Both the position numbers and the translations under genes were made by a program. The notes under the pieces are model-generated. The model ran no database searches. It had not been told where the DNA came from and saw only the letters and a list, made by a program, of their open reading frames with translations. A stretch of 64,000 nucleotides of DNA from the NCBI GenBank assembly GCA_965240325.2, contig OZ251237.1, positions 992,001-1,056,000 on the forward strand, written 5' to 3'. Each line of letters begins with the position of its first letter. Within the stretch, counting starts at the first letter, position 1. This document shows, one piece after another, positions 33,878 through 43,769 of the stretch. This DNA is from Rebecca billardiae RCC1528 (Eukaryota; Protista; Haptophyta).

Positions 33878-33946
33878 CTCGACCGCGCTCACGCCTTGGC
33901 TTGGCCGCCACCCCCAATGGAGCGGCGCGGCCACTGCCCACTGGCC

Positions 33947-35030
33947 GAGTGCACTCGAGCGAAATCGTGCCTGGCTAGGTGTCCCTCGGCACTGGGCGGC
34001 TAGGTGTGCGCCCGCACACCTAGCCAGGGCTGGCTAGGTGTCCGCCCATACCCTCGCGTCGTCAGAACTTTCGGAAACGAAAGTCGCGCCAAGGCGGCCC
34101 CGGTGCCTGTGTCTTTAAATCATAGAATTGGTCTTCTCTCACGGCGGCGCAAGGGGCGCGGGGGCGCTGGCTCGCGATCCGAAGGGCAGTCGCTCGCGAC
34201 CTCGCTTGGGCGGCGGCAGCGGCGCTGCGGCATACTGTTTGCCACCCGCGCGGCTGTGTGCGATCGCGCGGTCCCGTTCGTCGCCACGCCGCGCGCGACC
34301 GTTCACGGCACAGTCTTTCCGCACTGTGAGCACCCCTTGCCAGCGCACGGCGGCGGAGAGCCCAGACAGCCCGTCACGCGCGCGACGTCCTTGTGGGGTG
34401 CGATGTACTCACACTAATGCTAGCATGCGCCTGCGTTTTGGTGAGCCTATTCAGCATCCAGACCACTCTCTACTGCTGCAAGATGAGTCATCGTCTGCCA
34501 ATCGGTCAACGAGTCATGGACAGCGCAGCAGTCGTCCATGATCCTCATGCCCACCCCGTGGGCAAGCGCGTGCCTCCGGGAACCCAAAGAACCTGGGTAC
34601 ATCGCACCCCACAAGGACGTCGCGCGCGTGACGGGCTGTCTGGGCTCTCCGCCGCCGGGCGCTGGCAAGGGGTGCTCACAGTGCGGAAAGACTGTGCCGT
34701 GAACGGTCGCGCGCGGCGTGGCGACGAACGGGACCGCGCGATCGCACACAGCCGCGCGGGTGGCAAACAATATGCCGCAGCGCCGCTGCCGCCGCCCAAG
34801 CGAGGTCGCGAGCGACTGCCCTTCGGATCGCGAGCCAGCGCCCCCGCGCCCCTTGCGCCGCCGTGAGAGAAGACCGGGGCCGCCTTGGCGCGACTTTCGT
34901 TTCCGAAAGTTCTGACGACGCGAGGGTATGGGCGGACACCTAGCCAGCCCTGGCTAGGTGTGCGGGCGCACACCTAGCCGCCCAGTGCCGAGGGACACCT
35001 AGCCAGGCACGATTTCGCTCGAGTGCACTC
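33947..35030. mobile_element. Non-autonomous long-TIR (foldback) DNA element, 1084 bp, 5-bp TSD TGGCC
   Basis: Arms 33947-34408 and 34597-35030 are near-identical inverted repeats with one 28-bp indel. TGGCC lies at 33942-33946 and 35031-35035. Four GCTAGGTGT subterminal motifs per arm. Confidence 0.88.
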
Positions 35031-35161
35031 TGGCCGTGGCCACCCTTGCCGTGGCCAAACTGGAAAACGGTCTTCGTCCGTCCAGTTGAACACCCCGGAC
35101 CGAGCAGTCCCGCCGCCGAGGCGGAGGGAGCCACCGCGCGCGAGAGGAGCGCCGCCGCGTC

Positions 35162-39659: not shown

Positions 39660-42600
39660 CAGTCCGGGTCAAGTGCACGCTTCGCGAGATCTGAGCCTCG
39701 CGATGGCGTCGGCCGGGATGCGGCCCCGCAGCCGACGCCCCTCGGCGGAGGGGGCGCGGCGCCGCGGCGCGAGCGAGGAGGCGGCGACGAGGTGCGCGCC
39801 TGCACGCACCGGTCGTGTGTGGCCCTGCTCCGCGCCTCCGCGGCCAAGCAGCTGCACTCCCTCGCCCGCCCGCCCGCTCGCGCGTGTGGCGTGCGCGCGC
39901 GGGGCGGCCGCGCACCCTCGCGGGGTCGCGCGCGCGTGGCACGGCCGAGGGCGGCCAGGCGGGCGCCGCGCGTGGGGGCCGTGCGTATGACCCCAAGAGC
40001 CATCGCGCGCGCCCGGGCCACCGAGCCGGATACGGCCGCGTTGCGATTTCCGCAACCGCCAGACACGCGCGTGCTCAGAACGGCGCCCCTCGGCCCCGCG
40101 TGCGCGCGCGACGCGCGCGCAGGGCGAGGGAGCGCCGCAGGGGCTGTTTCTGGCGCGGGCAAAGAGGGGCAGGTATAGCTGACTGCCACCATCTCTTCTG
40201 ACCTGGCGGTGACGGTGGCAGGCTCGGCAGCGAGCTCGGCAGTCGGGTCGGCGGCTGTGCTGATGGCGGCGATGATGGTAGAGGGCTTGGTGGCGGAGAT
40301 GTAGGCAGTGACGGTTGCGGGCTCGGCGGCGGGCTTGGTGGCGGCGACGTAGGCGGTGACAGTGGCGGGCTCGGCGACGGGCTCGGTAGCGGCGACGGTA
40401 TGCAGCTGACCCGCCACCCACGGCCCGCGGCCGACGGGCCGCTTGCGGCTTGGCGGATGGCCAGAGAAGCAGACGGCCGGGCAGTCTGGGCGGCAGCGAG
40501 GGTGGTGGGGATGGACACGGGCTCGGTGGCGGAAGCGGCAGAGGCGGGCTTGATCAGCGGGCTCGCGCGGCGGCCAGCATGGCTGGTTCGGCGCTGGCGA
40601 TGGCGGTGGGAAGAGTCTGAAGGTCAAAGCCTCCTGGCCGGAGTAGCTCCGCGGGACTCCCTGCGTCACCACGGGAGGGCTGAGTTCGTGAGGGAGATCG
40701 ATCGGCGTCATCACCAGGCGGTCGATCTGGTAGATCGAGTTCCACAGCAGGAGCTGACGCCGCATGTTGCATATTAGCAGTCACGTAACGACAACCGTAT
40801 AGTAGCCGTCTACTTTCGCGGCTGCATCACTATCGTCGCGTCATCGTCATAATATCATTATTTTTATTCGATCGTCTCGCGGCCCGGCAGCGGGCAGCAT
40901 CCTCAGGCTCAGCTTCACAGTCGGCTGACGACTTGGCAATCAATCCTTGATAGATTGCGGTCCTTCGGCTGCGAGTGCCCGGCCAGCGCGCCCGGGGCCT
41001 GCTCCTGACGACACGCGACCTGAGACTGCCTGCCTGAGGCTCATGATGCTTATAATATTGCCGCATCCGAATGTTGGAGGCGCCCAGTGCGTGACGGCCG
41101 GTCGTTCTAGATAGATCCGCCGCACTAAGGCCGCACGGCCGGCCGCGGGGGTTCATTGCCATTGGGCCCGGCGGTGCGGGGCGGCACTGCCCTGCTGCCC
41201 ACTGCTGACCCGAGGTCGCTCCGTCACGCGGCAATTTCAGGGATGCAATTCGCGCTGGCGTGGCACGGGTCTCTGCCCGCGCGGCATGCAGGATGAGGTA
41301 CGGCTGCCTGATGTGACTGACGTGGACCACTGACCAGGCCGCGGGAGCGCAGTATATCGCTGACGCATCCCAGCAGAAACTTCAGGGGAACCCGACAATG
41401 ACGGACTACTGATATGCTTCCACTGTAGCAGTGCTGCTCTACTTGCTCGTCATGAAGATCGACGACTCGTCATGATCACTCGAGTCGTCAAGTGAGAGTG
41501 ATACGGACACCATATAGCCATCGCAGCACGCGCCGTTGCCGTTCGAATGCAGAATAAGTCGCACATTGTCCTGCTGACAGAGCGCATACGGTACTGAATG
41601 GCTGCTGCCGTGCAGCATGCAGTAACGTCTGGTGCAGTAATTAGCAACAGCCAGCACAGCAGGAGCTCAGATTGTGATGCTGGTACGCCGTATCATCAGC
41701 GCAGGCGCTTGTCCAAGTTGATGCCAGCGGGGCGGGTAGGACGCGGTTGACGAGTAATAGCCCGTGACGAACTCTGCTGACGATGAGTCACGACGATGAA
41801 TAGCAGGGCGGATGATGATGCTGCTGTGATCCGTACTCGTATAGGGATCTACACTTACAGCTAGCTACTCATGACGATCGGACAACGCTGGCGGAGCACT
41901 AGCAGCCTACGGTCGCTGAGTAGTCTAAGTCAGTTCATCAAACTCGACCAGACTGGGCAGCGACGACCATCCCTCTCACGGACTCAGCCTTACTGAGGTG
42001 ACGCAGCCATCCCGCAGAGCCCTGCTTCAGCATGTCCGGGCATCGGTGAGCCAGAGCCAAGCGGGTGGCCCGTACGACAACATGGCAGCGTCAGCACCAA
42101 CACCCAGAGCTTGGCCGCGCTGTGTCACCGCAAAGCTCTGACCGAGAGCGACAGTGACGCGGCGATCCCGCCGCCGCGCCGCCGCCTCAGCCGTCTCACA
42201 GCCCGTCTTCGTCGGGCCGCCGAACCGTCCACCGAGCCAGCCACCGGTCTCCACCATCACTAAGCCACCGCCCGCAGCAGTCTACGTCCCGGCCAAGGCG
42301 CAGGCATCGGCCCGGCGTTTGAGCCTGCCAGCACGCCGGCCAGCGCTCTGATGCCGCGCGTCCTCGATACTGGTTGCCGAGCTGTCGCGCTGCCGTGCCC
42401 GGCAAGACACGTGGATCCGCTGCCGAGCATTCACCAGCCTCCGAACCCGCGCACGCCTCCGACCGGGGCATGCATGCACCGTCGATCTACCCAGCCGGAA
42501 GCAGCTCGACAGCCCCGCTGTGTGGCGCGCCTGCCGGTACGTCCGCTGCCTGCTCGAGGGCGAGCGCGCACCGCCTCACCTGTCGACCACGACAGCACGC

Positions 42601-43670
42601 CTCGCGTGCACACTCTGACGGCGAGGCCCGGGATCCGGGCGGGCGATGGCACTACCCACGCCTCCGCCAAGTCTCGGCCTGGCCGAGGGGCGCAACACTG
42701 GCCGAGCCCTTGGCCCGGCGCGCCGCCGCCAGCCTGTGCTGACAAGCCCAAGCCGTGCGCGGCAGGCATGCACGTGAGAGCGGCGATGGGCGGCGTTGCG
42801 CGGCGCCAGGAGGGCCAGGGGCATGTCAGACTCGACTCCGCCGCGTCGCGCGCGGCCAAGCGCGCGCTCTGCACTAGGGACGCGCGACGCGAGGCGGGCG
42901 CTGCGCACGCACGCGGCCATCCCGACCAGCGTCAAACGGGCGGCGCCAGCGGAGGGAGGTGGTGTCGTCAGACGAGAGCACCTCCCTCCGAACGAGAGCG
43001 CCTCCCAGTGGGAGGGACGTGCTCACGAGTACGAGTTCGGCTGTGCGCACTCTGTTCGCGCCGGCCGGCGGCGCACGGACAGACACACAGATCACGTCGG
43101 CTGGCAGCCAGCCGCTCTCTGACCAGGTCAGAAGAGATGGTGGCAGTCAGCTGTACCTGCCCCTCTTTGCCCGCGCCAGAAACAGCCCCTGCGGCGCTCC
43201 CTCGCCCTGCGCGCGCGTCGCGCGCGCACGCGGGGCCGCGGGGCGCCGTTCTGAGCACGCGCGTGTCTGGCGGTTGCGGAAATCGCAACGCGGCCGTATC
43301 CGGCTCGGTGGCCCGGGCGCGCGCGATGGCTCTTGGGGTCATACGCACGCCCCCCGCGCGCGGCGCCCGCCTGGCCGCCCTCGGCCGTGCCACGCGCGCG
43401 CGACCCCGCGAGGGTGCGCGGCCGCCCCGCGCGCGCACGCCACACGCGCGAGCGGGCGGGCGGGCGAGGGAGTGCAGCTGCTTGGCCGCGGAGGCGCGGA
43501 GCAGGGCCACACACGACCGGTGCGTGCAGGCGCGCACCTCGCCGCCGCCTCCTCGCTCGCGCCGCCGCGCCGCGCCCCCTCCGCCGAGGGGCGTCGGGCT
43601 GCGGGGCCGCATCCCGGCCGACGCCATCGCGAGGCTCAGATCTCGCGAAGCGTGCACTTGACCCGGACTG
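39660..43670. mobile_element. Non-autonomous long-TIR element, 4011 bp, termini CAGTCCGGG, 3-bp TSD GGA, carrying decayed gene-like cargo
   Basis: Arms 39660-40206 and 43123-43670 are near-identical inverted repeats. GGA lies at 39657-39659 and 43671-43673. No transposase ORF was recognised inside. Confidence 0.85.
40207..40765 (-). pseudogene. Decayed Ser/Pro-rich (SPPP, extensin-like) gene fragment inside the element
   Basis: PSPLPSPSPSPPLSPPTSPPPSPPPSP.. spread across shifting frames. Confidence 0.45.
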
Positions 43671-43769
43671 GGAGATCAGCCTCCATTGATTGTCCGGCCG
43701 CTGTTGGGCGGGCTGCCAGGCAGCGTCGCCCTGGAGGCGGCGCGGCTCCCTGGGCCTCCGCGCCACCCC

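Follow-up and report, generated by a model that had tools for sequence, protein, structure and literature searches.

Two dissimilar long-armed DNA transposons in head-to-head spacers of the haptophyte Rebecca billardiae, from families with strong and weak preference for gene 5' flanks

Insertion near gene starts with little sequence specificity is characteristic of rice mPing, Hermes/hAT and maize Mutator. The Drosophila P element makes ~70% of its insertions near promoters (PMC10018349), and 'precision-targeting' elements insert at transcription starts in a manner tied to transcription initiation (PMC7337890). Insertion both up- and downstream of genes by active DNA transposons is on record for the haptophyte Tisochrysis lutea (PMC10138859). 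The present analysis concerns two insertions with long terminal inverted repeats (TIRs), termed element 1 and element 2, in a 64,000-nucleotide stretch of the haptophyte Rebecca billardiae RCC1528 (GenBank assembly GCA_965240325.2, contig OZ251237.1, positions 992,001 to 1,056,000 of the forward strand), which is called the window below. As an initial annotation of the window had described, both were found inserted in head-to-head gene pairs, between the two start codons: element 1 between two RCC1-repeat paralogs (A and B), and element 2 between HCCS and a FUT8-like glycosyltransferase gene. That annotation had further proposed that the elements target divergent promoters and that their symmetrical arms act as outward promoters.

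Elements 1 and 2 were confirmed as bona fide insertions of multicopy families. Copies of the families were dispersed over dozens of loci on >20 contigs, with flanks that differed at each locus, and were bordered by target duplications of fixed length, which were 5 bp and perfect in 26 of the 30 copies read for element 1's group, with letters varying by locus, and 3 bp and perfect in all ten full copies of element 2. No similarity was detectable when the two elements were compared with each other. Judged by their sequence organization, both are classed as non-autonomous TIR (class II) DNA transposons, and it is likely that they represent two independent insertions of unrelated cut-and-paste elements, brought into head-to-head spacers because such spacers are frequent in a compact genome and because integration is 5'-biased. 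The targeting proposal held in part, the preference for gene 5' flanks being strong in the element 2 family and weak in the element 1 family.

Insertion context was scored on exon calls from a codon-usage caller trained on the window and its flanks. For each copy, ~1.5 kb was taken on each side, and the side was scored as facing a 5' end, as facing a 3' end, or as lacking a gene within 500 bp. For the background, both elements were excised and every remaining non-coding position of the window was scored in the identical way, and counts were made over nine threshold settings. The window's own copies were excluded from the family counts because they had prompted the question, leaving nine other copies for element 2 and, for element 1, a sample of 29 copies besides the window's, out of at least 48 paired. 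The element 2 family was sampled whole, since its tips occur on no other element in the genome: a genome search with its tip pattern at <=3 mismatches returned nothing beyond the ten copies, a truncated one and single hits at scattered places. In the background, head-to-head spacers accounted for 9% of non-coding positions (4-11% over settings) and the 5' share of gene-adjacent sides was 41% (38-45% over settings), with 3'-flanking and tail-to-tail DNA (classes 03 and 33) forming the largest non-coding class in the window at 39% of these positions. Tail-to-tail spacers (426-3900 bp) were longer than head-to-head spacers (105-691 bp), so that random integration would favour 3' flanks.

In the element 2 family, sides facing a 5' end outnumbered sides facing a 3' end by 10-11 to 0-1 (p <=0.001 against the window background and <=0.006 against 0.5), and three of the nine other copies lay in head-to-head spacers (p 0.005-0.08). 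Distances to the start codons were short, at 7 or 43 bp and 10 bp for copy C27, 61 and 51 bp for C36, 52 bp for C8, 53 bp for C15a, and 57 and 99 bp for the window copy. Four of the ten outward open reading frames (ORFs) beside element 2 copies were confirmed with Pfam (Nup85, PAN, group 1 glycosyltransferase and FAD-binding), all four in the expected orientation and with their N-terminal domains near the element. For the 29 other copies of the element 1 family, the corresponding ratio was 12-20 to 4-15 (p 0.002-0.14 against the background and 0.04-0.26 against 0.5), and there was no enrichment in head-to-head spacers, which held 1-3 of the 29 copies (p 0.44-0.88), compared with a 4-11% share of the window's non-coding positions. 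Distances of 50-75 bp to the start codon were seen on 4/11 sides for element 2 and 5/19 sides for element 1, compared with 8% in the background; this clustering in both families was noticed post hoc (p ~0.01 each) and is only suggestive. Copies were also observed 20-700 bp from other repeats, in the flanks of L002, L009, L010 and L024 and at the C16 copy of element 2 (L047/L048). Transposons thus share spacers by clustering or nesting, and the head-to-head counts are lower bounds.

The proposal that these elements target divergent promoters was partly supported: the element 2 family showed a strong bias towards 5' flanks, and the element 1 family a weak one with no enrichment in head-to-head spacers. 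As worded it is too specific, and the bias is more accurately put as one towards gene 5' flanks, of which head-to-head spacers are a frequent subclass in this genome (~8 of the window's roughly 27 spacers). Several DNA transposons are well known for such a preference, which is here a familiar habit in a new host. What is added is a measured case from a little-studied algal lineage, in which one DNA transposon family lies almost only beside gene starts, with the start codon often 50-60 bp away, and a second family of that genome shows different behaviour. The 5' bias of the element 2 family resembles that of the P element, Mutator, mPing and Hermes/hAT. The duplications differ, being 8 bp for the P element and hAT and 9 bp for Mutator, against 3 bp and 5 bp here, and the present bias, in a GC-rich alga, was measured on fixed copies rather than on new insertions.

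Element 1 is a member of a group of long-armed elements of 1.1 kb to 4.7 kb with GAG...CTC tips, a 5-bp duplication and the target C|NGWCN|G, and element 2 of a young ten-copy family with a 3-bp duplication and CAGT tips. Under the preferred account, integration would be biased to accessible DNA directly upstream of start codons, strongly in the element 2 family and weakly in the element 1 family. We infer that this bias is set when the elements integrate, by open chromatin or by the transcription-start machinery, and not by survival after insertion. Were integration random, the same pattern could be left by survivorship, with insertions in exons, introns and 3' DNA purged and those in 5' spacers kept. 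Such a history would be helped by the coding share of the window, which the exon caller put at 63%, by the finding that most copies had almost no non-coding DNA within 900 bp other than the spacer they occupy, and by the nature of the data, which are fixed copies from one assembly. It is nevertheless rather unlikely, as 3' and tail-to-tail DNA, the largest non-coding class, is usually more tolerant of insertion and yet held only 0-1 of 11-12 sides in the element 2 family, and the harm from an insertion in a promoter, 10-60 bp away from the start codon, would be expected to match or exceed that from a 3' insertion. The near absence of the element 2 family from that class is why an integration preference accounts for the data better. 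Several points weigh against an integration preference all the same. The element 2 family comprises ten copies only, the background is a single 59-kb window with roughly 27 spacers, and gene orientations were taken from our own exon caller, checked in part with Pfam. Site choice is inseparable from selection after insertion when all copies are fixed and come from one assembly, and a permutation test in which sites were moved within 900 bp of each reconstructed empty site was powerless because so little other non-coding DNA lay nearby, with short spacers sometimes scored as coding. Finally, 9 of the 30 element 1 copies (window's included) were more than 500 bp from a gene on both sides, several of them lying beside other repeats, so that a promoter preference is not general for this family.

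The arms might instead matter after insertion, each carrying an outward promoter or transcription start, so that the elements would be tolerated or favoured in shared promoters and both neighbours driven by transposon sequence. By geometry, both neighbours indeed receive nearly the same upstream sequence. Little native upstream DNA is left at the C27, C36, C8, C15a and window copies of element 2, and with start codons so near to several copies, transcription of some genes might plausibly begin within the arm. The ORFs next to the close copies are still intact, but this is uninformative on expression because the copies are young (98-99% identity). No outward-reading ATG was present in the outermost 344 bp of either element 2 arm; such a stretch is not unusual, however, with ~2.5 ATGs expected per arm, and in element 1 an outward ATG lies 103 bp from each tip, so that the arms of elements 1 and 2 showed no depletion of outward ATGs. 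Inspection by eye of the arms and 24 native upstream regions revealed no common promoter motif other than a few CCAAT/ATTGG boxes, and the element 1 family is often far from genes. We regard promoter activity of the arms as improbable. Slightly less probable again is the wider proposal that these are long-armed transposons specialized for positions ~50-75 bp ahead of start codons, frequently within shared promoters, which persist as each arm supplies an outward promoter or start, so that a single insertion rewires two genes. Should transcription indeed start in the arms, two genes would come under the same control through a single insertion, offering a simple way to co-regulation, and the element would constitute a natural bidirectional promoter cassette for algal engineering.

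Element 1 occupies 33947-35030 (1084 bp) and is a near-perfect palindrome, in which the arms make up 902 of the 1084 bp (~83%); the term 'foldback' used for it in the initial annotation is therefore apt. Its parts are as follows.

33942-33946, no strand: left target duplication TGGCC, read directly.
33947-34411, plus strand: left arm, inverted repeats I3 and I5 (98-99%), with the tip GAGTGCACTCGAGCGAAA.
34412-34593, no strand: central loop of 182 bp, the ORFs of which gave no Pfam match.
34594-35030, minus strand: right arm, inverted repeat, sequence read.
35031-35035, no strand: right target duplication TGGCC, read directly.

The tips are of the GAG...CTC type, with GAGTGCACTCGAGCGAAA at one end and CTC at the other. 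Subterminal GGCTAGGTGT motifs are repeated in the left arm, and a 25-bp insert at 34105-34129 is present in this arm alone. When element 1 was used as query against the window's own genome (72 Mb, 41 contigs), 155 matches were obtained from 237 candidates, and identity to copies elsewhere was 97%. Tip searches of the genome gave 44 tips for the GAGTGCACTCGAGCGAAA subfamily and ~57 exact tips for a second 1.1-kb subfamily with the tip GAGGCCACTTCACCGAAA; the GAGGCCACTTCACCGAAA pattern with <=1 mismatch gave 103 tips, spanning this second subfamily and a 3.0-kb relative, for whose own tip GAGGCCACTCCACCGAAA 45 were counted. In the copy of the 3.0-kb relative at G000:C3:1044350-1047362, the arms were 870 bp and the 5-bp duplication was CGACC, and the interior of this relative contained no ORF >165 amino acids. 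Three copies of it at G000:C11:1119643-1148553 are spaced at exactly 12,950 bp, which looks like a tandem segmental repeat of ~13 kb containing the 3.0-kb element. Alignment of 26 empty sites from element 1's group gave the weakly palindromic target consensus C|NGWCN|G centred on the 5-bp duplication, with C before the duplication in 19/26, G at its second position in 19/26 and G after it in 17/26.

Two readings that would remove element 1 or both elements from the list of transposons were rejected as next to impossible. Inverted arms produced by misassembly, which the initial annotation had named as a refuting case, are excluded by the recurrence of the same structures on many contigs, at dozens of loci, bordered by duplications specific to the locus. 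An origin of element 1 as the centre of the RCC1 inverted duplication might be suggested by the symmetry centre of the gene pair (~34514-34518), which falls <=30 bp from the centre of the element; two centres within a 195-bp spacer are necessarily close, and the element is 97% identical to copies elsewhere, compared with 75-83% between the RCC1 paralogs.

Element 2 occupies 39660-43670 (4011 bp). Its arms amount to 1095 of the 4011 bp (27%), so the designation 'foldback' could not be kept for it and it is described here as a long-TIR element. Its parts are listed below.

39657-39659, no strand: left target duplication GGA, read directly.
39660-40206, plus strand: left arm of 547 bp, inverted repeats I2 and I9 (99-100%), with the tip CAGTCCGGGTCAAGTGCAC.
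40207-43122, no strand: interior of 2916 bp, with no recognizable gene and three ORFs that gave no Pfam match.
42287-43052, plus strand: arm of a 4.7-kb family inside element 2, ~88% identical to the ~780-bp arms of that family and ending in ...GCGCACTC.
43123-43670, minus strand: right arm (arms 547-548 bp, 99-100% identity).
43671-43673, no strand: right target duplication GGA, read directly.

The termini are of the CAGTCC type, CAGTCCGGG. The family consists of ten full copies that measure ~3.2 kb or ~4.0 kb and share 98-99% identity, together with a truncated copy and one or two isolated arms. The duplications of the full copies (GGA, TGA, ATC, TGG, TGT, TCG, CTA, GGA, ACA and TTC) comprised eight distinct triplets by our tally, with GGA present twice. 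The ORFs of >=100 amino acids tested in the two elements matched no Pfam family, and their codon scores were negative or low, those of element 2 being negative; no protein, and no transposase, was found to be encoded by either element. A 421-codon frame on the minus strand at 39500-40765 starts at an ATG within element 2, runs through the left arm and ends in exon 1 of HCCS; it is out of frame with HCCS, has a negative codon score and no Pfam match, and is probably a spurious frame driven by GC content. Degenerate repeats were noted inside the element at 40283-40530.

The interior of element 2 is composite. The stretch 42287-43052 is a remnant of another transposon group: the query stretch 2081-2848 of element 2 recurs at >12 loci as inverted pairs ~4.7 kb apart, and the ...GCGCACTC end is a GAG...CTC tip, as in element 1's group. 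A further stretch, 40872-42249, is 74% like the interior of the same ~4.7-kb long-TIR family, which consists of the same non-coding pieces as the element 2 interior. The remnant was present in every long copy of element 2. A 107-bp piece of the 4.7-kb-family arm was also seen outside the element, at 37887-37993, in the spacer where RCC1 paralog B and HCCS meet tail to tail.

With the foldback elements Drosophila FB, Galileo and Tetris, element 1 shares the design of an element that is mostly arm, with subterminal motifs and no gene, whereas element 2 differs in its short share of arm. Target duplications are 9 bp in FB and 7 bp in Galileo, a member of the P superfamily, and are matched neither by the 5 bp of element 1 with its GAG...CTC tips nor by the 3 bp of element 2. 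Transib elements make a 5-bp duplication at a GC-rich symmetrical target and have CAC ends (CACNNTG) resembling the heptamer of recombination signal sequences. Element 1's group is alike in the duplication and the target, and differs in its tips, which are GAGTGCAC or GAGGCCAC and not CAC...; a RAG1-like transposase, for which no search was made, was not found. Element 2 resembles CACTA/EnSpm (CMC) elements in a 3-bp duplication without fixed sequence and in long subterminal regions, and carries foreign DNA as do their non-autonomous derivatives; its tips read CAGTC, CAGTCCGGG, in place of CACTA or CACTG. No transposase of the CMC type was linked to element 2, the tips of which were confined to the ten copies, and no autonomous partner was found among the element 2 tip matches, the 3-kb relative or the 4.7-kb family, transposase families as such having not been searched in either case. 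A PIF/Harbinger assignment of element 2 was rejected, since its 3-bp duplications vary (GGA, TGA, ATC and others) and are not TAA or TTA.

The window is gene-dense, with a GC content of ~67%. The genes bordering the two elements are listed below.

32363-33877, minus strand: RCC1-repeat gene, paralog A, 504 amino acids, directed away from element 1 (PF25390 7.5e-70, PF00415 1.9e-65; codon score 151 bits).
35162-36631, plus strand: RCC1-repeat gene, paralog B, 489 amino acids (Pfam PF25390 9.1e-79).
38839-39602, minus strand: HCCS, cytochrome c haem lyase, in two exons, exon 1 from the ATG at 39602 and exon 2 to the stop at 38839.
43770-45233, plus strand: FUT8-like glycosyltransferase gene, 487 amino acids (codon score 201 bits; PF19745 25.9 bits).

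The distances given previously between the elements and the start codons (69 and 131 bp for element 1, 57 and 99 bp for element 2) are exact when the duplications are counted as spacer. The reconstructed empty sites measured 195 bp for element 1 and 153 bp for element 2, in agreement with the ~150-200 bp expected after removal of the elements, and six further head-to-head pairs were called in the window, with spacers of 105-691 bp. The four neighbouring ORFs had been reported as intact. This was upheld for both RCC1 genes and for HCCS, the two exons of which were each searched alone with PF01265 and scored 34 bits over profile positions 77-130 (exon 1) and 139 bits over positions 127-297 (exon 2). 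For the fourth gene, which begins at the first ATG past element 2, the assignment was weak, and the label 'fucosyltransferase' is tentative because the PF19745 score falls under the cut-off of 27.6 bits.

RCC1 paralogs A and B form an inverted duplication at 32363-36631 (inverted repeats I1 and I4) with a DNA identity of 75-83%. Both are made of 156-bp (52-codon) RCC1 repeat units and begin with MAS followed by an F-box-like LPPELL stretch. Beyond paralog A, a stretch of low GC content (47-54%) was observed at 29000-32130 within a long tail-to-tail spacer, closed by a perfect (AT)n microsatellite of ~128 bp at 32000-32127.

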